Assembly: GCA_964252035.1 (NCBI GenBank)
Contig: OZ176212.1
Source: Podarcis erhardii
Taxonomy: Eukaryota
Direction: 5' to 3' (one strand)
DNA: 64,000 nt
Both the position numbers and the translations under genes were made by a program. The notes under the pieces are model-generated. The model was not told where the DNA came from, searched no databases, and saw only the letters and a program-made list of their open reading frames with translations. Numbering within the stretch: the stretch's first letter is position 1; each line of letters begins with the position of its first letter. Positions 11,426 to 25,104 of the stretch are shown piece by piece.

Positions 11426-12779
11426 GGCAAAAAAAGAATTTATTTAAATTCACTTCTCTTGCCTTGTCAGTGTCTCATTATTCATCGCTACACAGGTGTG
11501 TTATCAGCATGGGGTAGGTAGTGATGTGGCTCAAGGCACTGAAAATGGTTTGGGAGGGAAATTATTTTAAGGGATAGAGATGGAAAGACATGATTTTTGA
11601 AAGCACAAAGGAGAAGCTTTGGGAAGTTTACCACAAGGAACTATTAATATATGGCAAAGAAATAGTTTTATTTGTTTATCCACTGAAGAATTTATAAGCT
11701 GCATTCTCTCATAAGTATTGACAAGGTGGTATGCAACATACAAGATAAAACCACCAAAGGCATCATTAAAAACATCAGTAAATACTAGTTACCACAAAGG
11801 AAAGAAATGTGAAGGCCTGTCTATAAACAGTTTTCAGAAGATGTCTTAAAGAAGGCAGGGGTGATTTCTACTGAAATTATGTGACTTGATCAACTTGATT
11901 TAATAGAAATAAAATATTTGCTCAGTGCATCTTCTGCCAGCATAGTGACGAGATTATGCTGCTAAGCATAACTTTACTTCTAGGTATCTTTTAGATGTAC
12001 AGTGCTAGTTTACCTAAATTCTAATTAATTGTTTGATACTCTTTATTTCTATTCTCATGTGCTGAGCTTCTAAGCTGGTTGCCACTGTAAAAAAGCTCCT
12101 CACTTTAAAAAATAAGATTGCCATCTTAAAAGCCAGTGAACTGATGCGGCCAATTTACTGAAGAGTAAAGCCTACAGAGCACAATGGGGCTTCTCAGTAA
12201 AGATGCTTAGTTGCAGTGGTAATGAGGAAGTGTGTGAAATAAATCCCCACCACAATTTATCATGAAAACCAAAGGAAGGAGCCATCTGTGTCCTGTTGGG
12301 TAAGAGTGCAGTGTTGATAGCCTTCATAGGGGCAAAACATTTTCTTAGCCCAGCTGTTTTGTAGAAAAATACAGAAAGCTATGAGCCCAATCTCCCCCTG
12401 CCCCCTGAAATGGTATTAAAATCAATGGGATGGGTCCATGTAAACATTGCACGGTCTGAATTGCTTGCTTATTTGAACCTGAGCCTCCTTTTATACAAAC
12501 CTGAGCTTGGGTTGCTTTGCAGTTACTCTTTTCTGGGCTTAAAAACACAAGTAGACAAGTAACAAAAAATGAGCCATATAACTTACTGTTCCTGACCTGC
12601 ACTGGGGGAGGGGGAGGAGAAAATGCGCTCCTTGTTGGTTTGCCTCTTTTAAAAGGTGAATATTTCATAAGAGTTGACCTAAATGTAGCTAAAACCGGTT
12701 TTGACGATACAATATATTAATGATCTATAAAGAAGTACTCTTTGCCCTCGACCAAAATGGCTCTCAAAGCTTCCAGTAG

Positions 12780-13200
12780 TTGTGGTAGCTCTATGCTCTT
12801 CGGAAGACTCTCCTCTATGGTCCCGAGCAGCCGTTATACGGGAAGGCGCACGGCCTCCTCTCTTCCGAGGCCTAAGTCGATGACGTGATTTACAGTGTAG
12901 GGAGCAGCGCTGTTTCTATGGCGGGAGGGTAGCGCGAGGCGCGTGCGCGCCTGCGCGTCACTCCAAAGCGCCCATTCGCCCGCGGATTGAGAGCGGCGCG
13001 GAGGAGTCTCGCCTGCGCCTGCGCGCGAGAGTAATACCTGATAGGATTCCTTTGCAGGAGTTAGGAAATGGGTGTGCGCAGCTGCCTCTTAAAGGGGCAG
13101 AATCCTCGAGTAAAAGGGGAAGTCGCCTGAGCGCCAGCCTGGAGGGCAGTAGAGAACAGGACGGAGGTAAGATAAGGTTGCACCTTTCTTAACTGTGTGC
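12780..13200. promoter_or_regulatory. CpG-island promoter with non-coding first exon (donor at 13166/13167); putative shared promoter of the Harbinger-derived gene and TMEM219
   Basis: CpG-dense. NRF1-like GCGCCTGCGC motifs (about 12947 and 13015), TGACGTGA 12881-12888, strong donor GGAG|GTAAGA. No other promoter-like CpG island before the TMEM219 ATG apart from the CpG-rich transposase ORF. Confidence 0.7.
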
Positions 13201-13947
13201 CATTCTTGCATTTCCCCCCCCCCCGGGTCTGTTCTCCATCTGGTTATTCTCATCTAAATCCTTTTGTTCAGCTATTTTGGAGCAAGGATTTAGGTTTCGA
13301 AGAATGTAGCCCCTTGGGGGATAAAATAGGGGGGGGGGTTGCCTTCGTTTGCTGCCTCACACCAAGTCAGCCCATTGGTCCATCTTGTATTGTTTACTCT
13401 GACTGGCAGCTGCTCTCCAGGGTCTTTCTCAAGCTGAACGCTTTTAGCTGCATGGCCAGAGGTCGAACTTGCATTTTCTGAATGCCAAATACTGAATTTG
13501 CCTCTGAACGATAGCACCTCTCAGTCAGGGAAAGTCACAATTTGTATCCTATACATGCCGCAATCCTTTGCATATACAGTATATGCCCAGAAGTGAGTTC
13601 CACAGTGGAGCTTATTTCTTAGTAAGTATGCATAGAATTGCAACCTTGTGTGCATACGTTGAGAGAGATTAATACACTCCTGTATTTCTGGAGCTTAGAC
13701 TATTTACAAGTGAATGCATTTTTTTTCTCAGTGCACAGCTGAAAAAGAAGTTATATGTCTACCTTCCATGTGAAATACTGCATTTCCCCAGTATCATTAA
13801 TTATTCCTAAAGCACTTCTTAGCAAGCAATCCTGGTTTTCAGTGCTCTTCTTGTCACTATGGAAGTGAGTCAGCCACATCATTGTTTCTCACCATGCTTG
13901 ATGGACTTTTGCAATTAAGAAAGTTTCTACCTGGATCTCCTAACCCT

Positions 13948-14160
13948 AATGTGGTACTGCGGGTGATGTGCCAGACTAGGACCAGGGAGACCAAGATCCA
14001 AACCCCCATTCAACTATGAAGCTCACAGGGTGGTCAGTCACTGTCTTTCAGCCTTACCTCACCCACAGGGTTGTTGTGAAGATAAAATGCAGGGACAGCT
14101 ACGTATGCCTCTTTGAGCTCCTTGGAGGAAAGGTGGGATATTATGTATTAAACGAATAAT
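13948..14160 (+). mobile_element. Squamate SINE (CORE/MIR-like body, LINE-derived tail)
   Basis: CACAGGGTTGTTGTGAAGATAAAATG core and CTTTGAGCTCCTTGGAGGAAAGGTGGGATAT...AAT tail. Ends approximate. Confidence 0.55.
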
Positions 14161-14976
14161 ACTGCTGTACCACACTAACCATCTTCACATGTGCTTACTC
14201 ATATTTCTCTCTAACCCAAAAGCTTATTTTGAGCTGGGAGCTTAAGCTGCCGGGAACCTGTTTTGAGTGCTACCACTGAACCATGAAATAACAGTAAGCT
14301 GTGCTGATTGGTTCTCATCTGGCAAGGGGGCTCTGGTTTGCACATGGCATGCTGCCTTTTGGCCTTCCCTCCCCAGACTCAATAGCTGAGCAGGCAGTTT
14401 TCGTAAAGATAGGGCAGGATTCAGTTATCCTATTTCACTAGCAGACAAAGACTTCTACTAGCCTAATGGGGCTTCACCCACCTTACGCCTCTCCCAAATC
14501 TGCTCTGAGAACCCACAGAACAGATCACAGGGAGGAGAGGGGAAATTGTTCCATCAAGCAAGCAGCAGACAGAACAATCTCCTTAGCGCTAGCCAGAATT
14601 CCACCCATGGTTGTTGTTTTTAAAATCACAATTGTCCCCTCAGTAATTTAATAAGAGAAAGCTGGTGTAGTGTAGTGCCTGAGAGACTGAGCTATGAGTC
14701 AGAAGTCAGGACTGGTTTGGATCTTACCTCTGCCCTGAGCTCACAAGGTGCCTTGGGGAAGCAATTCTCCCTCAACTCACACCTGTTGCCGTATTGGGGG
14801 ATAATGCAGATTTACAGACTTACAACTGGATGATGCATATGAACTACTGTGAGCACTTGAAAGCAGTCTAGGAATATGAGGTATTGTTATTAACAGGACA
14901 AAAGACACCTCTACAGTTGTAATGTGAGCAGGCTGTGTGCTCCCATTGCACATTTGTGTCTGTGCATTCACACGTG

Positions 14977-15112
14977 CAGGCACCCCCAAACTCGGCCCGC
15001 CAGCTGTTTTGGGACTACAACTCCCATCATCCCTAGCTAACAGGAGCAGTGGTCAGGGATGGTAGGGATTGTAGTCCCAAAGCATCTGGAGGGCCAAGTT
15101 TGGGGATGCCTG
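14977..15112. mobile_element. hAT-type MITE, 136 bp
   Basis: TIRs CAGGCACCCCCAAACTCGGCCC / GGGCCAAGTTTGGGGATGCCTG. Flanks CACACGTG / CACATGTA fit a decayed 8-bp TSD (6/8 match). Confidence 0.8.
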
Positions 15113-16816
15113 CACATGTAGGTGCACTTAAGATGAAACACACCTATAGTTTCAACTGTGTGTGTTTGTGTGTGAGAGATGAATGCTGGAGAATGAGAGC
15201 TCTAGTATGTGATTGCTAACGTGATTTTGGTAACAAATTCCCAAAGGCAGGGCCACACCTAGAAAATAGGGACAGATGGGGTGGATAAGGAGTTTCTTGG
15301 TAGATCCTTTGTTAGAGTTTAAACCAAACCACTTTCTGTCTCCAGACTATCTGTCTTTCCATGCCACTATCTTGGCCACCCTTCCCCTCTTCCCTATACC
15401 CAGTCACTGTTCTCTCATCTCTTCCTTGTCTTTGGCAACTGAGTATGGGATGATGATCAGATTAAATGAAGGGCTCTTCTGCCTTTCAAATAAGTATTTA
15501 GAAGATGCAGTGGCTTGTACAGAACTATGTAGGAACCCAGGCTGCAATTGAAGCTGGTACCTCTATCAGTAATGGGGTCCCAAAGCTCTCTCTGTGTGTC
15601 TATGTGGTTTGCATCCAGCCCTAACCATGTTATTATTTAAAAGTAAGTAAGTAAAAGTGAGTTCAGTGCGATTTGCTTCCAACCAAGGATGTGCAGGGTT
15701 GCAACTCTAATGTACTGAGGACACACGGAAAACTGTGTTGCATGAGAAAAATCAATATTCCCTGTGGAAGGGGGAGTGGGGGGGGGTTATTGTAGCAGAG
15801 AACATGTAGATCAGTTCCCAATGTTCTTCATTGTTTTTGTAGTAAGTCAAAGCTGGGCATTAAATGACTTCTGGGCATTTTGCTAAGGATGGTGGAAGAG
15901 CAACTGAACTGAATTATTTGGGTCAGTAGGCCAACAGAACTGCTCTGATTCCGTGAGCTTTAACCACTGAGAACACATTAGCATTCTGCTCATTTCACAG
16001 AAAAGAGGATTTAAAACTGCTCATTTCGCTGTAGTCATGGTTCAAATGGAATATTTGGGGGAAAATAAAATACAGCTGTCTCACTAACTTGAGCAGAGGT
16101 GGAACTCTGGAAAAGTGGTAAGATTTTAAATCTCACAGGATTTACCTCAGAACCTGATTTTCAAGACTCAGCCTAATTGCCTCTGAGCATGTATAGAGCG
16201 CTTTCCCATCACTGCTGAGTAACTCCTGTTGGGCTGAGCACACCTGGAACAAGCAGGGATGCTGAACCTCTGAAGCCAATTAAGTTACAAATCAGATATC
16301 AGGTGGTTGACCAGTTTTGAGATAAAGTCCTAGCTTCAGAGAGTAGGCAGTTACTGGAGATGGGTGTGGGTTGATGTAAGACGAACACTATGGGAGTAAT
16401 ATAGGAATGTGATTGAGGGGTGCTCAGCTGGAAGACTATTTATGGGCCTGGAGGTAATCTGGGATGGGGAAGACATAGGCAACTCTGAAACCTTTAAGAA
16501 TTTTGAAATGTAGAATGGGCAGAGATTGGACCTTTCCCAAGTGTGGTGGAATAAATTTCTTATGCTCCATCTATTTTGCTGTTTAGAAAAGGCCTTCACG
16601 GTTGAAATACAAATATGATTCTGTTACAATATATTGCCCTTCAGCTCAACAGCACCTTTCCGGCTGAAGCACAAGGACTGGTGATGTCTCGTCCCTGCCC
16701 AGCGACATCATCCCTGCCTTGGCTAAGGGTGTAGCAAGGGGAAGGTTTTTCTCGTAGCGCCTTCACGCCACTTCCCCCCAAGCCTTCTGCAAGCTTCTTC
16801 AAGAGCGGCCGGATAA

Positions 16817-18172
16817 ATGGAGCAGGAGTGCCTGGCTCTGGTTGCTGCCTGCGTCCAAACTTCCCAGTTGCTAGTGCAGCAATGGATGCTCAACAGGCGC
16901 ACGGTGATTTTCGCCATAGCGAGGATTCTGCAGAGGAGGCGCTTCCGCAGGTCGGCTGCGGTGCTGAGGCGCATCCTCTCAGCCAGCGTCCGCCGCAAGA
17001 GAGCCCTGCTGCGGCTTCACCGGAACGCCATCGTCTCCGTGGTCACCATGGTGTACTCGTCTTCCCCCGCGCTGCACTACGAGCACGAGCTGATGGCCTT
17101 GTCTGAGCGCTCCCACTGGATGCTTCCGAGGTGCAGCGAATGGTGGGAGCGGATGATCAACTCCGAGCAGGATGACAAGTGCTGGATTTCCTTGTTCAGG
17201 ATGTCGCGGTCCACGCTGATGTACATCGCCGAGGAGCTGCGCCCTGCCCTGCAGCGCCGGGACACGGGCATGCGGTCTCACATCCCTGTGGAGAAAAGAG
17301 TCGCCATGACTATCTGGAAGCTGGCGCACCACGACAGCTACAAGACCGTCTCGGAGCTCTTCGGGGTGGGGATTTCGTCAGCCTGCTCAATATTTGAAGA
17401 GGTGTGCGAGGAAATAAACAGCAGGCTGCTGACCCAGATCATTAAGCTGGGAGACCCGCAGGAGATCATTGAGGGCTTCAAGGAGATGGGTTTCCCCAAT
17501 TGCCTCGGCGCAATCGATGCAATCCACATCTCCATCCTCTGTCCCCCGTTCTCTGCCGACTCCTACATTAATTGCAAGGGTTTCTATTCTATGGTGCTGC
17601 AGGCCCTGGTGGACAGCAAATCCCGGTTCACAGATATCTACGTCGGCTTTCCGGAGAGGTCCCACGACTCCCGCATCTTGCACAACTCTCCGTTCTTCAA
17701 CAGCATGGACGAAGGCACTTTTGGGCCACAGGCGCCAACGGTGCTAGAAGGTGTTTCGATGACCCCTGTCATAATTGGGGATCCTGCCTATCCACTTCGC
17801 CCCTGGCTCATGAAGCCATACCCAGCGCCAAAAACCGGGGCCCAGGAAAAATTCAACGAGCGGCTCGCTAAGTGCCGAGCGTGTGTGGAGAGAGCTTTTG
17901 GGGTCCTGAGAGCTCGCTGGAGGTGCCTGCAGATGAGGCTGGATGTGAGGGAGAAGCTCATTCCTGTGGTCATAGCCACCTGCTGTATCCTGCACAATAT
18001 CTGCGAGATCAAAGGGGATGAGTTGCTGGAGCCGTTGGAAAGCCCCGCAGTGGCTGAAAGCCAGAATGCTTCAGCCAGGCCAAGGGTGCCCTTGTCAGAG
18101 GCTGGACTGACCAAGAGAGCTTGCCAGATCAGGGCTGCTTATTGCTCTTATTTTGAAAAGAACCCTGTGTAA
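16817..18172 (+). CDS. PIF/Harbinger transposase-derived protein (HARBI1/ALP1-like, DDE_Tnp_4 family), intronless, 451 aa, probably domesticated
   Basis: Uninterrupted ORF. HTH-type region FRMSRSTLMYIAEELRP...IPVEKRVAMTIWKLA...VSELFGVGISSA. Acidic residues D234 (GAIDAIH), D284 (RSHDS), D322 (IGDPAYPLRPWLMKPY), E358 (VERAFGVLRARWRCL), and C-terminal CCILHNIC. Not the HARBI1 orthologue by motif sequence or locus. Confidence 0.93.
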   Translation: MEQECLALVAACVQTSQLLVQQWMLNRRTVIFAIARILQRRRFRRSAAVLRRILSASVRRKRALLRLHRNAIVSVVTMVYSSSPALHYEHELMALSERSHWMLPRCSEWWERMINSEQDDKCWISLFRMSRSTLMYIAEELRPALQRRDTGMRSHIPVEKRVAMTIWKLAHHDSYKTVSELFGVGISSACSIFEEVCEEINSRLLTQIIKLGDPQEIIEGFKEMGFPNCLGAIDAIHISILCPPFSADSYINCKGFYSMVLQALVDSKSRFTDIYVGFPERSHDSRILHNSPFFNSMDEGTFGPQAPTVLEGVSMTPVIIGDPAYPLRPWLMKPYPAPKTGAQEKFNERLAKCRACVERAFGVLRARWRCLQMRLDVREKLIPVVIATCCILHNICEIKGDELLEPLESPAVAESQNASARPRVPLSEAGLTKRACQIRAAYCSYFEKNPV

Positions 18173-18303
18173 AGTGGGGTGGGGGTGGGGGGAAACAAAG
18201 CAGGCTCGTTTGTCCATGTAATTTCTTGGGTGTGTATGACCTGGTTGTAGTATACAGACCCTGTATTGCTGATGCCTAGCATGTGGTAGTTTTCTACATG
18301 TCA

Positions 18304-18309
18304 AATAAA
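18304..18309 (+). terminator. PolyA signal of the Harbinger-derived gene
   Basis: AATAAA 132 nt after the stop, followed by a GT/T-rich downstream sequence. Confidence 0.6.
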
Positions 18310-18656
18310 AAGGCTATGATTTTGAGTGGTCTGCTGCTATATTTTCTAAGAGATGGGATTTTTTAAAAGGTAATTGCTATGGTAAAAGCATAGGGTGGGA
18401 CTTGAACCAATGATGGTGTAAAATAGAAGAGTGAACAGTTTTTCTTAAAGGGGATTTATATACCTACCACTCTATCTCTAAAACATTAACAAAAATACAT
18501 GGTATACCTGCCTAATGAAAATGGAAGTTCATGGACAAATTTTCTAGCCTGTTAGAAAGTACACTCTGGTTGCAATCCTATGTACACTTACCTGGGACTA
18601 CGTTTTACTGAACTCTCTGGGACTTTCTGTAGAATCCTATCATGTTCACCCAGAAA

Positions 18657-18844
18657 CATAGCTGTCAACTTTCAGATTTGAAAATAAGGGATCAGCAGCC
18701 TCGAAAATAAGGGACCAGCAGGCTCACCTGTCCTGGGGACAGTCTACGGGATATCTAACAATCCGGGATAGCAGCGGGAAGCAGCAGGAAACGGTGCTGG
18801 AATAAGGGAATTTCCCACCAAAAAAGGGAAGGTTGACAGCTATG
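18657..18844. mobile_element. Young hAT-type MITE, 188 bp
   Basis: Perfect 13-bp TIRs CATAGCTGTCAAC / GTTGACAGCTATG and perfect 8-bp TSD CCCAGAAA (18649-18656, 18845-18852). Internal repeat GAAAATAAGGGA; CpGs retained. Confidence 0.92.
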
Positions 18845-20979
18845 CCCAGAAATATCTCAAGATGTTTCAGTTGGCTAGTCTAGTATCCAGATGCTTGTGG
18901 GGGAAATCAACAAAGATCATGAAGATGCATGCTACTCCAGCCTCTCCAATACTAAATGCAGGTTTTATGCTACTTTGCTACATGAAGCTATCGTCTTCTG
19001 GGTGTCATCTAAAAGCTGTTTCAGTGTTGCAGGTTCATCTGGACACCCAGGGATTTTTAAGATGAGACACATGGATTCAAGGGGAATGGCTGACGTGAGA
19101 TTTATATGAACCAGTAACCATGGATCCACATAATGAAACAGTTTAGACAGTCTTCTTAAGCTAAGATACGAACAATACTTTTGTTCACACTAAAACCAGG
19201 AATCTTCTAATCATAATTTCCTGGTTTGGTAGGGTCGCCATGTTTCAAAAAGTGAAAACACTAAGTTTTATTTTGTTTTTTTGCAAAATTGCAAAAATGG
19301 CTATTTTTTAAGGGAAATTGACACTGCTGGCTTAACTGGTTTAATTGCAGCTTTCAGGGAAAAGTGAAGGGGCTGTGTTCAGGGGCAAAAAGCTTATGCA
19401 TTTTTCAGCCTAATAAGTCTAATAAGATATTACTAATAAGATATGACTGTCTGAATGCATGTGATAACTCCCACTTTCCATATCTAGGCAGACATGGTTT
19501 TATCCTGGCTTGCAAACCAGAAATGTCAGTAACATTGTTTCTCAGTTCAGATGTCAAGCGAAGCTGATTTAACAAACTGGGAATCTTCCCCTCCTATGGG
19601 GCACATGAGAGAGGAAGCACCCATACTCATGGTTCGCTCCTGCTCTTAAAAAAAAATAAAAATCACTGAGCTGTTTTACGAAAGGAAACAACAAAAACAC
19701 TTGTCCTTCCATATTTAAGATTTTTCTAGGAAAGTATATTTTTTCAATTGGCAGGGAAGCCAAACACAGAATAAATGCATTCATGATGATGGTCATTGTG
19801 CTTAATGCCCTGTTTGCTAATTGCTAGGGATGGTCTTCAAGGGGAGACTTCTGAAGTGATAGTGCAAAGCAGTAACCGGTGTACTTTGGTTGCAAACATG
19901 TTCTGCTGATCCTTTCTTTCACAATGCAATATTGTGCAGACACACAGAATGTGTAGAAAGTGGCTTTTGACAATTACGTGCCATTTGCCACAACTACAAC
20001 GTTGAACAGTTAGTAGGGTCATTTTAACAAAACGGCTTTAAGCAAAAACTGTAGCATGTTCCTCCACTTCAAAGCAAAAAGAGGATTTGTTGCATTTCCT
20101 TTGCTTCCGTAGGCAGCAGTCTAGTGTCACCAGGACTGAATTTGTAGCAGAACTCACCTAAGCTTAGCACTAGAACACAGAGGTTGCTCAAGAGAGTCTC
20201 TGGGTTGTATCCAGCTAAGTTCTACCCTAAAGGAGACCTGAAATTATTGAACCTAAGATAGACTTGTCCATTCAGTTCATTGGGTCTGTTCCGAGTACAG
20301 CTACCACTGGAGACAATCCTCTCCCTCACCACTGAAGGACACTTCCCCTGTTACAAGTACTGGAAACATACAACCCACATTAGAAAATGGGCAACAATCG
20401 CATGTGTAGAATTGTTGCTGCATAAACAGGCTTTGAAGACCACCAGGAGTGTACTTGCCACATGTGATCATCTTTATGTGCTTACCATGATGTTTCTTAC
20501 AGAGGACTTGCCTCCTATGTGTTGTGTAATGTAGGAAGCAATCCAGAAAAACCACAACTCCCCTCCCCCCCCCCCAGCAGCACCACGAACACTCAATCAA
20601 GCAATACATAGCCAAGATCAGGGCTTCTAGGCAGCCTTAAACTCTCCTCCAGCCAATGCCTCTTCATTTAATATGCGATTTAGAAGAAAGATGCTGGGGG
20701 GTGGATATGAAACAGTGGGGTGGGGGGAAGGAGACAAAAAAACAGATTGTCTTAGCCTTTTGAGGACATGGTGGCTGCTATGTGGATCATAGTGGGATGT
20801 GAGAAATCAAAAAGGACCAAGTGTCCCTCAGTTGTCCAGCACTCTATTTTTGAAAGTGTATAAGTTGATTGTTCTGTATTTAGCAGTTACCTTTGGACAC
20901 TTAGGAGGGTGTTGGAGAAGTTGGTTTTGAGGATCACCAGGCAAAATGGCATTAGCAGAACTTTCAGTGTTGGAGAACA

Positions 20980-21260
20980 TCAACAGCTTTGCTGAATCAG
21001 GCCAAAGGTCCATCTAGTCTAGTATCCCCTTTCCTACAGTGGTAAAGTATACACTTCTGGGAAGCTCATAAACAGGCATAGAAGCAATAGCTGTCACGTG
21101 TTATTACTCCCTAGTGACAGTATTATCAGGCATGCTATGTCTTAAGTTTGGAGTTTGTATGTAGACTTTCCTTATACTAATATCAAATCCATTCTCCCAA
21201 GTTTGGATCCTTGTGCAGCTAAAAGCGCATGATGAGTGCACATGGAAGAGTTATTCAGGA
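20980..21260 (+). mobile_element. CR1-type LINE 3' fragment
   Basis: GCTGAATCAGGCCAAAGGTCCATCTAGTCTAGTATCC motif, with related copies at about 21590-21750 (+) and 41030-41280 (-). Family assignment from memory. Confidence 0.45.
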
Positions 21261-23246
21261 AGAACTGAACATGCTCAGTGGCTATAGAAAACTGACTCTC
21301 AGTTGAATGGAGGGATGAATGGACAAGCGGGAGGAGGGAAAATGGAATATCTGGGAAAAGGGTATGGCTGGCTGGCAGGAATTCCAAATAGGAGCCTCCA
21401 TACTACAACTTTTTGTTGCAGGTTCCACTTGTCGTGATTAATAGCTAATGGTAAAACACATTAATTCTCCATGAAAGTGTATTTAATCCATCTATGCTAG
21501 TGCCCATCACCACATCTTGCAGTGTGGCAGGGAACCATTTGTGGGCTTAAAAAGAGCTCATGACCGTGTGAGCACAGCCAAGGGCTAATCTGTATGTTAA
21601 GAATGTATGAAGGGTCTGCTAGATCAGGCCAGTGGCCCATCCAGTTCTCATAGTGGCCAGCCAAATTCCTATCAGAAGTCTGCAAGCAGGGTCTGAGCAC
21701 AACAGCCCTGTCCTCACGTACAGTTCCCTGTAGCTGACATTCCCAGCAGCAAAGGTACAAGAGATCACATGCTGCACAATGATCTTGCTAGCAGTTCACT
21801 GCAGTAACTGCTAGCAAGTTGTGTGATGTAAACAAACCAACGTTGATTTGTGGGATATACAACACAAAACAAGTCTACCATGAAACTACACATTCACATG
21901 CAATTCTTAAGAAATATGGGGAGAAACTCTCACAAGACCAGAAGACTCAAAGGAGGGAAGCCTTATGTAACAAAGGAATGGAACAAAACTTAAGAAATCA
22001 AACAAATGTGGCGTTCAGTTTACCAGTTTATGCTGCTTATTCATTTTGTGGGGGGTTCTCTCTTTTGGTGAATTTTGAAGGCACACACAAAGATCAGCAT
22101 CCCCATATTCTTTTTTAAAAAAACTTTATTTAACAAAGGAAAAACAATGTGATCAACAACAGTGCATCATATGGCACATTATACTTTAAGATTTGACAGA
22201 GATTGTTAAAAATAACCTCCTTATAAAGTTTTCCCCCTTCCTCATTCCCAACAAATAACACCACACTGCGAGAAGACTTGGCAATGATGAGATTGCCATG
22301 TTGGGTGGAGCAAATGAAGCAACTATGGGTTGCAAATATCCAACTTTCTCCTATAATTCCAGCTCTTTCTTTCCAACTTAATTGTGTTGAAATTTGCCAC
22401 CTTCATCAGAAATATAGAGAAGTAGGAAAACCTTACCTGTATATCCTTGAGTGCAACCTTCTTTCATACAAGCAGAGTCATCCAGCCAGTTGCGATGATC
22501 AAGAATCTAGTGGTTGCTAACTTCTAAGTCCCCCCCCCCCCAACGCATAGATTTAGAGCTAATTTAAACAATGAGGTGTATGTAGTGCAGTTTTCCCTGA
22601 GGGCCTTACTATGTCAAGATACACATGGGCGGTGGTTACTTGTCTAAAAACACCCCAGTCAAAATATATTCATTTTATTAATTTTTGAATTGCCTTTCAC
22701 GTGTCTCAATCTGAATTACAATATAAGCAACTAACATACTTTTAAAAGCAATACAAGATGGAGACCTTTTCATCCAGATGGAAATGTTTGTTGAAACAAA
22801 ATGTCTTCAGGTTTTTTTGGAAAGCACATAAAAAATGAATATGAAGTAGCAGTATATCACCTTTCCATTTACGTGGCGATCCTGAGGCAGGGGCAATCTC
22901 AAGGAAACCAATTCCTACTTTATTTTCAGCAAGTTTAGTCCCTTTAGACAACCAGACCGCATGCACGCTGAATATTTAAATAATCACTGAGCAATTTATA
23001 AGATTGAATTAATATCTCTTGGTGTTATTTCCATTCACATTTCTGGGACACAATTTGACTTTTAAAAATTTATTTATTTAATAAAGCAAAGCTTATGATT
23101 GTACCACACAAAATGCAAAGGGGAATAGGTAGCACACCGCCTACCTTTTCCTTACCCTTGATTCTGGCTGTTCCAGCAGATGTTTCAGCTTCTTCTAGTG
23201 CTGGGATGACACTGCAACCTTCTTACCCTCATTCCTAGGGCTGACC

Positions 23247-25104
23247 ATGGTCACCTGCTCCCTGCTGGGCTCCCTGCGTGTCTGCCTGGAGCGACACCCA
23301 CCTCTGGTCACCTTCTTCTTTTGCCTCCTTTCGTTGGCTGTTGCCTTTGTTGGTTTTGCTGCCTACATCCAGTCACATGATGTTCAGAATCCCGATGTCA
23401 AAGAGGTGAGCTAGAGATGATCACCTTAAGTAGAAAATCAGACCAAAATGCTGGGGGTGGAATTGGGTTGTGGTTGTAAAGCACGCATGAGAGACTTTAG
23501 GAGGCAGTGGTGGGTGCTCTACCTTCTCCTTGGTCTCTTACTAACTGTTTAGGCTCAGCAACTGAATGGTTCTCTGACTGAAACTTTCAGGGTGGTTGGG
23601 TATCTTCTCGGATGGAATGCACAGAATGTCCCTAACAATTATGGGCTGTGACGGGTACGTTGGGTGTTCATTGCAGAGGCAGACTTGTGTGATTTATCTT
23701 TTGGCAATTGGTTTTATTTATTACCATTTTCTAACAGACTTGAGAGATTTACCCAAATTTGAACAGCTGCATTGATTTGCTCTCAAAAATAGTGTTGCCT
23801 GTGTTGGCTGCTGTTATCATACCATAATGACCCAAGCTAAACATTCATGAATTACAGAGGGTTGGGTGTTGTTGGTTTTTACAAATACGCTATAAGAAAC
23901 TGTCATTGAAAAGATAGTCCTGAATGGATACTATCACAAGAAGTGGGGAGCAAAAGAATAGGATATTCAACAGTACAAAATTTTTAATTAGTAGGTGCAG
24001 CTATATCTGAAATATTCAACGATCCGGCTGTTCTGAGATGTTTTATGGTACTTTTAAAATACAGTTCCCATCTTTCAATTTTCTAGCTGTTAAGAGCAAA
24101 AGGGAATTTTTAGAGGCAAGATTGGGTGAAATTGGAAAGGTACTTTAAAAGGCAGAAGCAAATGAAAAAAATGCAATCAAGAGAATAGAATCAACTAAGA
24201 GTCAATTCTCATTCCTTTCCCTCCCTCATCTCTAAGGACTGGAATTCTCTGCTAAAGTCTCTGGCACACTTAATGTTCTGTATCCCAAATAAGACGCAGG
24301 AAAGTGCCTTGACACCAGCTCCCTCCACAACCACTGCTGAGACCCCTACAACAGTCTCTGTCATGGTTGGCTTGACCTTTGACCTCCACAATGGCACAGA
24401 TCCTCCCAATGGTACACGTCTAGGTCTGACAGTCACTGGGGAAAAACTGGGTCTCAAAGGTGAGTGATTTCTCACTCCTGACCAATTGCAACATCCTCCC
24501 AAAGATTTCAGGAACTCTGGTTCCGTGTCCGTCTCCCCTTGACCTTTCCTTCCATCAACTTCCAACCACAGGTCCAGATGCCCAGGAATCAATCCACTTC
24601 TTGACTATCATCACGAACTCAGTCTCCCATGAGAACTGCCTTAGCATCACTGCACCTTCATCCCTTCTCCCCAAGACCAGGTGAGCCAAGAGATTTAGTT
24701 TCAAGGAGTTCTTAACCCATTAATGCAATACTCCCATCTTGTCCCCAGACAACCACCTAAATGTGTGATAGAGGAATGGGACATGCACCAAGAAGAGACA
24801 GGAATTTGTTACCAGCCACATTACCAGGCTAATCCTGCCCTGTCCAGCATGCTGGATCAGGTAAGGTGAATGTGGGCAGTGACAGTATCTGGACCTGGGG
24901 ATTCTGGGCTTCTTCAGGATGCAAGCTGGATTCTAAGGGGAGGAGCATTCACTGTTGCACTCCTTTCACTCTCAGGCGGATCGTGCCCTGTGCAGCCAGC
25001 GGCTCCTGATGACCAGTGCTTTCCTTCTCTGCCTCTGTGCCATGCTATGTTGTGCAGCTGGCCTGTGCTATCCTAACCCCAGAGACAAGTGGGGGCAAAT
25101 CTAA
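23247..25104 (+). CDS. TMEM219: TMEM219 (IGFBP-3 receptor), 5 coding exons, 243 aa
   Basis: Exons 23247..23405, 24237..24459, 24572..24680, 24749..24860, 24976..25104; GT-AG, in frame, 732 nt. CLERHPPLVTFFFCLLSLAVAFVGF (TM1), NPDVKEDWNSLLKSL, GEKLGLKG, ALCSQRLLMTSAFLLCLCAMLCCAAGLC (TM2) match TMEM219. Located directly upstream of TAOK2 as in human. Confidence 0.92.

Follow-up and report, generated by a model that had tools for sequence, protein, structure and literature searches.

A domesticated Harbinger transposase gene in the TMEM219 5′ untranslated region intron of squamates and its putative expression as an alternative last exon

Gene order and origin of the intronic open reading frame

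The sequence analyzed here (the window) comprises 64,000 nucleotides (nt) of one strand of contig OZ176212.1 of Podarcis erhardii (GenBank assembly GCA_964252035.1). It carries a CpG-island first exon, an intronless open reading frame (ORF) of 451 codons derived from a PIF/Harbinger transposase, and TMEM219, which encodes the insulin-like growth factor-binding protein 3 (IGFBP-3) receptor. The original prediction, made from the letters of the window, had placed the ORF as an alternative terminal exon in the 5′ untranslated region (UTR) intron of TMEM219, with one promoter serving two unrelated proteins. We compared the locus in eight squamates, namely, the P. erhardii window and the loci of a cobra, Podarcis muralis, Gekko, Pogona, Anolis sagrei, Rhineura, and Eublepharis, and the TMEM219 exons were compared exon by exon.

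The ORF lies in all eight squamates between a conserved exon-1 splice donor and the TMEM219 exon-2 acceptor, and the clades that carry it at this site are geckos, lizards, an amphisbaenian, and snakes. The order NUFIP2-like gene, CpG-island exon 1, ORF, and TMEM219, all on one strand, was recovered in six of the seven fetched squamate loci; in the seventh, that of A. sagrei, TMEM219 follows the ORF and the 10-kb flank ended short of the NUFIP2-like gene. Homologues of the TMEM219 ATG exon begin genes that were called with the Pfam TMEM219 domain (loci L001 to L010). The intron DNA is otherwise unalignable among distant squamates, and P. muralis differs from the window by ∼6% at the DNA level. 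The syntenic locus of turtles (Lepidochelys and Carettochelys) has the same neighbors, with ∼2.4 kb and a CpG island between the NUFIP2-like gene and the TMEM219 ATG exon, and no Harbinger ORF was found in this interval. The Xenopus NUFIP2-like locus was uninformative, as TMEM219 was not reached within 10 kb.

The ORF product matches Pfam DDE_Tnp_4 across the full model (2.9e-29; residues 233 to 394), which bears out the Harbinger origin originally proposed, with further matches to Plant_tran (2.8e-16) and, weakly, to HTH_Tnp_4; no TMEM219 domain was identified in it by Pfam, and a PDB sequence search with the protein gave no match. A word search returned a single cluster of 44 members at ≥90% identity, the next match being at 48%. 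The listed cluster members are 451 amino acids (aa) long throughout and come from gecko, skink-like, lacertid, iguanian, and amphisbaenian lizards and from snakes only. Sixteen squamate orthologues aligned without gaps at a mean identity of 97% (99% between the Lacerta agilis and window proteins), and the pairwise ratio of nonsynonymous to synonymous divergence (dN/dS) ranged from 0.011 to 0.058 across 451 indel-free codons, with dS from 0.12 up to saturation. Among 14 diverse Harbinger homologues, residues D234 and D322 do not vary and E358 is nearly invariant, and in the 16 squamate orthologues all three are invariant. Each species has one orthologue, at a single syntenic site across Squamata. 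The inverted-repeat search around the ORF gave chance-level pairs only and no terminal inverted repeats. In the phylogenetic tree, the squamate clade has tips of 0.004 to 0.03 on a long stem and is nested among reptile Harbinger families.

The ORF is thus a domesticated PIF/Harbinger transposase gene, acquired in the squamate lineage, and not an active element, because it is single copy, syntenic, under low dN/dS, free of terminal inverted repeats, absent from the turtle locus, and placed on a tree of this shape. Literature searches that paired TMEM219 with Harbinger, or that addressed domesticated Harbinger genes in squamates, turned up no account of the gene or of the arrangement, and the gene in the TMEM219 intron is apparently undescribed in the literature searched.

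Splice, polyadenylation, and promoter signals of the locus

Exon 1 ends in ...GACGGAG/GTAAGA (slash, splice junction) within a CpG island (positions 12751 to 13200) that has a GC content of 0.58 and a CpG observed/expected ratio (o/e) of 0.97. Equivalent islands occur in all 7 other squamates (o/e, 0.79 to 1.06), 3.5 to 9.5 kb upstream of the ORF, and this upstream island is the only one with an o/e near 1 in every species. Two promoter-like blocks of exon 1 are conserved, one GCGCATGCGC-like and the other TCTTAAAGGG. The exon-1 donor could be aligned in seven species (Table 1), and the same motif is visible in the cobra, right where the compared sequence slice begins. No CpG island was found in the window between the ORF and the TMEM219 ATG exon. 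Two candidate features were tried and did not hold up well. A conserved upstream ORF starting from the ATG of exon 1 was rejected, since this ATG is missing in Pogona and A. sagrei, and a CpG-island promoter of the ORF's own was weakened by an o/e across the ORF of 0.37 to 0.85, like that of the other coding exons of the window, and by the 165 nt before its ATG, which are CpG poor in most species (o/e, 0.60 to 0.69 in lacertids and 0.0 to 0.48 elsewhere).

The AG dinucleotides upstream of the ORF end at positions 16586, 16644, 16652, and 16757. The third of these belongs to a CAACAG acceptor that is invariant in all eight species and lies 146 to 164 nt upstream of the ATG; the preceding AG (the 16644 equivalent) is lost in the cobra, where CAACAG is kept, and the AG ending at 16757 is retained in six of the eight. 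Conservation climbs abruptly 30 to 60 nt before TTGCCCTTCAG-yTCAACAG, and the 25 nt that precede CAACAG show the highest noncoding conservation of the locus (0.86). Between this acceptor and the ATG, every species has an in-frame stop codon, located 3 nt before the ATG in six species and 117 nt before it in the two geckos. Because exon 1 is noncoding and this stop is present in all species, the product would be the transposase-derived protein alone, in agreement with the earlier claim that an N-terminal fusion is impossible.

A polyadenylation [poly(A)] signal follows the stop codon by 62 to 132 nt in all eight species (AATAAA, but AGTAAA in Rhineura) and is itself followed by a conserved T/GT-rich block, seen as a bump in conservation at positions 18292 to 18341. 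A donor-like site, AAG/GTAATT at 18369, is present only within Lacertoidea, in lacertids and Rhineura, with none in geckos, iguanians, or the cobra. With no conserved donor downstream, the ORF exon looks terminal, which speaks against its being an internal exon. The acceptor of TMEM219 exon 2, CCTTCTTACCCTCAyyyyTAG/GGC, is nearly invariant in the eight species. Such a long, near-invariant tract and acceptor indicate that the TMEM219 ATG exon is always internal and needs an upstream donor. The proximal pyrimidine tract, that of the ORF exon, is shorter than the distal one of TMEM219, and the ORF isoform may for this reason be minor or regulated. The donor of exon 1, the acceptor at 16652, the poly(A) signal of the ORF, and the acceptor of exon 2 are conserved beyond chance, because all four are kept in eight squamates whose introns are otherwise unalignable.

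The individual features that the original prediction had read from the window were recovered in this analysis, including the CpG island with its strong donor after 13166, the four AGs upstream of the ORF, the AATAAA at 18304, the separate acceptor of the TMEM219 ATG exon at 23237-23238 with no adjacent CpG island, and the TAA directly before the transposase ATG at 16817. The coordinates are collected in Table 1.

TABLE 1 Features of the TMEM219 locus in the Podarcis erhardii window
Feature	Position	Strand	Remarks
CpG-island promoter and noncoding exon 1	12751..13166	+	CpG o/e 0.97; exon end at 13166
Exon-1 splice donor GTAAGA	13167..13172	+	RAG/GTAAGN aligned in 7 species
Intronic short interspersed nuclear element (SINE) copy	14650..14790	+	Orthologous to exonized Rhineura cassette
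Conserved noncoding element, intronic	15880..16020	undefined	72-83% gecko to lizard
3′ splice region of ORF exon: TTGCCCTTCAG (AG 16643-16644) and CAACAG (AG 16651-16652)	16617..16652	+	Cross-species conservation
5′ UTR part of ORF exon	16653..16816	+	Conservation 0.6-0.8; AG ending 16757; TAA 16814-16816
451-codon Harbinger (DDE_Tnp_4) transposase-derived ORF	16817..18172	+	Pfam 2.9e-29
Short 3′ UTR: AATAAA 18304-18309 and T/GT-rich downstream block	18173..18335	+	Predicted end; conserved signal
Pyrimidine tract and acceptor of TMEM219 ATG exon	23210..23238	+	Nearly invariant in 8 species
TMEM219 exon, ATG 23247, donor GTGAGC after 23405	23239..23405	+	Sequence read directly

Several other elements lie in the intron. 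The conserved element at 15880 to 16020, which is ∼140 nt long and located ∼800 nt before the ORF, is retained from geckos to lizards and was not detected in the cobra. It has no conserved splice sites, and its consensus fold has no compensatory or covarying pairs; an Rfam search over 11 to 26 kb gave nothing at the gathering threshold and one chance-level match around the element, which may be an enhancer or a splicing regulator. In the 5′ UTR of the ORF exon (window positions 16690 to 16725), two copies of TCCCTGCC, ∼19 nt apart, flank a TGATGTCA-like motif, and this pair could represent transcription factor sites or a remnant of transposon subterminal repeats. In P. muralis, the part of the intron that separates the ORF from TMEM219 exon 2 contains a CpG-rich insertion of ∼360 bp (L002:15134-15494; o/e, 0.82); the window genome lacks this insertion, which probably represents a lineage-specific repeat. 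A tRNA-like SINE is common to Rhineura and the lacertids. The Rhineura copy (L006:7316-7429) forms a cassette exon, ag/.../gtaagt, in which a called 266-aa TMEM219 model starts (L006:7368), adding 26 residues. Since this SINE exon is upstream of the ORF, the ORF falls within an intron of that TMEM219 coding model. The window copy of the SINE reads GG/GA at the donor position and so has no GT donor.

Public annotation and models of ORF expression

The 451-aa protein is named [quoted passage not shown] in RefSeq for P. muralis, Pogona, Rhineura, Heteronotia, Notechis, Crotalus tigris, and Candoia, and a Vipera GenBank record likewise names it IGFBP-3 receptor isoform X1. The same protein often appears under 2 to 4 accession numbers per species, including XP_028557671.2 and XP_028557672.2 (P. 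muralis), XP_061446125-8 (Rhineura), and XP_020654611/2 (Pogona). Where it is annotated as a separate gene, the names are similarity based ("putative nuclease HARBI1" or "protein ALP1-like") or the product is "uncharacterized." No public name in use describes the protein correctly. The grouping of isoforms in RefSeq, as we understand the practice, needs shared exons, and exon 1 is the only candidate for exon sharing between the ORF and TMEM219 transcripts. Transcript data with a shared exon 1 would be expected to lead to the filing of the ORF product under TMEM219. When seven orthologues were looked up by exact match, all of the records obtained were genomic.

Taken together, the conserved signals, the upstream CpG island as the one island consistent across species, the Rhineura TMEM219 model that begins before the ORF, and the RefSeq naming make it probable that the ORF exon is an alternative last exon of the TMEM219 unit, behind a shared promoter. 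According to this model, a Harbinger transposon inserted into the short TMEM219 5′-UTR intron in the squamate lineage, and its transposase gene was then domesticated. RNA polymerase II would start at the conserved CpG-island promoter and produce one noncoding first exon, whose donor (13166/GTAAGA) would join one of two acceptors. Joining to the proximal acceptor at 16652 (or 16644), with an end at the AATAAA at 18304, would give a ∼1.7-kb terminal exon encoding the transposase-derived protein only, and skipping of the ORF exon with use of the acceptor at 23238 would give the TMEM219 mRNA. Such a layout would be that of a standard alternative last exon with intronic polyadenylation. The position, conserved acceptor, and poly(A) signal of the terminal exon in the original prediction stand; its junctions, the shared start site, and any regulation of isoform ratios, including the originally proposed switch that would couple the two proteins, are what we infer. 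A stronger version of the model holds that TMEM219 (IGFBP-3 receptor) expression must, in every squamate, pass the ORF exon as a gate, so that each transcript picks either a catalytically intact Harbinger-derived nuclease or a death receptor, that the two products are functionally linked, and that 200 million years of conservation reflect selection on the coupling itself and not on the ORF alone. We consider this version improbable.

Several observations weigh against a shared promoter. The ORF is annotated as a separate gene in Gekko, Thamnophis, Lacerta, Hemicordylus, Eublepharis, and A. sagrei. A word search for transcript-derived fragments, made with the 200 N-terminal residues, gave one genome-derived Crotalus horridus protein only. 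Further, a conserved 164-nt block before the ORF ATG contains a cyclic AMP response element (CRE)-like motif, TGATGTCA, and an ETS-like motif, CACTTCC, and together with the CpG richness before the ATG in lacertids these motifs make an internal promoter possible.

The separate annotations and the CRE-like and ETS-like motifs would fit an independent nested gene, driven by a separate promoter within the conserved ∼200 nt that precede the ATG (possibly that of the old transposon) and with exon-1 junctions that are minor. The 5′ UTR and the ORF are CpG rich in lacertids and Gekko, as such a gene might lead one to expect, and the VAChT gene nested in ChAT offers a precedent for internal promoters in addition to shared ones (PMC3053374). 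However, the abrupt start of conservation ∼30 to 60 nt before the invariant AG resembles an exon boundary, and the proximal 165 nt are CpG poor in the cobra, Anolis, Eublepharis, Pogona, Gekko, and Rhineura (o/e, 0.0 to 0.48). A TATA-like motif, TATAAATA, is present in 2 species only, and the product is grouped under TMEM219 in at least eight annotations. These observations leave an independently driven gene as a tentative, rather unlikely alternative.

Translation of the ORF from long TMEM219 transcripts, which would either retain the intron or continue into the TMEM219 exons, appears quite unlikely. An mRNA with a stop codon far upstream of later junctions should be unstable, and this counts against such a transcript, as does the retention in all eight species of the poly(A) signal together with the block that follows it. 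The donor-like site at 18369 would suit continuation into TMEM219 in lacertids and Rhineura, but its absence from geckos, iguanians, and the cobra speaks against this reading. The "isoform" naming in RefSeq is explained equally well by long transcripts, and ZBED6 is itself made in this way (PMC2780926). Finally, Harbinger families are plentiful in reptiles, and above all in turtles, yet the data on selection and synteny refute the notion that the ORF is a functionless transposon relic and the "isoform" models are annotation artifacts: 451 gap-free codons at a dN/dS of 0.01 to 0.06 with dS up to saturation, a single copy at one syntenic site across Squamata, no terminal inverted repeats, and very short tree tips on a long stem.

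Known systems, further Harbinger-derived genes, and significance

The closest known system to the ORF in the TMEM219 intron is ZBED6/ZC3H11A. ZBED6, an intronless gene domesticated from a hAT transposase, lies in intron 1 of ZC3H11A, is fixed in placental mammals, and uses a common promoter; it first came to notice as an annotated "splice form" of ZC3H11A, to which its sequence is unrelated (PMC2780926). Both cases involve a single-copy, intronless ORF from a DNA transposase that a large clade carries in intron 1 of an unrelated host gene and that forms no fusion, and the squamate ORF would share with ZBED6 the use of the host promoter. They differ in the transposon family and host clade (hAT in mammals versus PIF/Harbinger in squamates) and in the retained domains (the DNA-binding BED domains in ZBED6 versus the catalytic DDE core in the squamate ORF). 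In addition, ZBED6 is produced from a long, intron-retaining transcript, whereas the acceptor and poly(A) signal of the squamate ORF point to a separate last exon. The VAChT/ChAT locus also has a single-exon ORF for an unrelated protein in a first intron, with shared and alternative 5′ host exons (PMC3053374). VAChT, however, is not transposon derived, both cholinergic proteins act in one pathway, and internal promoters of VAChT are documented.

Splicing to an acceptor in front of a transposase is an established route to fusion genes (bioRxiv 10.1101/2020.05.07.082677). PGBD3 in ERCC6/CSB resembles the squamate ORF in that an intronic transposase exon is preceded by an acceptor and has its own poly(A) site, but it yields a fusion protein, while the squamate ORF has no frame continuous from the host exons. 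The original premise that known intron-captured transposases yield fusions therefore holds for PGBD3 and is incomplete, because ZBED6 in ZC3H11A intron 1 is a non-fusion case (PMC2780926).

HARBI1 is a Harbinger transposase-derived gene of jawed vertebrates, with a distribution ranging from cartilaginous fishes through to mammals, and its nuclear import requires the Myb-like partner NAIF1 (PMC9392472). The nuclear location that the original prediction gave to the squamate ORF product was an assumption. The squamate ORF is likewise a single-copy, constrained Harbinger descendant that has kept the DDE triad, and the retained triad and helix-turn-helix of its 451-aa product appear to resemble those of HARBI1, which was compared by description. 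The ORF gene is a domestication independent of HARBI1, because it occurs only in squamates at TMEM219, is 451 aa long, and has reptile Harbinger families at ≤48% identity as its nearest relatives. From exon 1 to TMEM219, no Myb/SANT-like gene or other conserved coding block was found beside the ORF; a partner elsewhere was not searched for.

Further Harbinger-derived proteins were observed. A second squamate-wide family, named "ALP1-like" (468 to 515 aa; P0003, P0004, P0006, P0009 to P0013, and P0016; L013:10001-12513), groups in the tree as a separate clade with short branches and a long stem and is for this reason probably domesticated too. A look-up of P0011 gave no record. In Thamnophis, its gene has introns and the position of the catalytic glutamate is occupied by G. 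An Apteryx mantelli (kiwi) protein of 639 aa (P0050) combines KRAB (PF01352) with a Harbinger DDE_Tnp_4 domain and is a candidate host-transposase fusion.

The squamate-wide gene described here joins HARBI1 in the known set of Harbinger-derived vertebrate genes, with its catalytic triad intact. The mislabeling of its product in at least eight squamate annotations means that TMEM219 expression counts and function transfer in reptiles mix two unrelated proteins. The ORF in the TMEM219 intron would parallel ZBED6/ZC3H11A in reptiles and could serve for studies of how a transposase comes to borrow a host promoter without fusion to the host protein. If the alternative-last-exon model is true, the locus would present a clean, deeply conserved competition between intronic polyadenylation and splicing that is testable in Anolis, for which genome editing exists.

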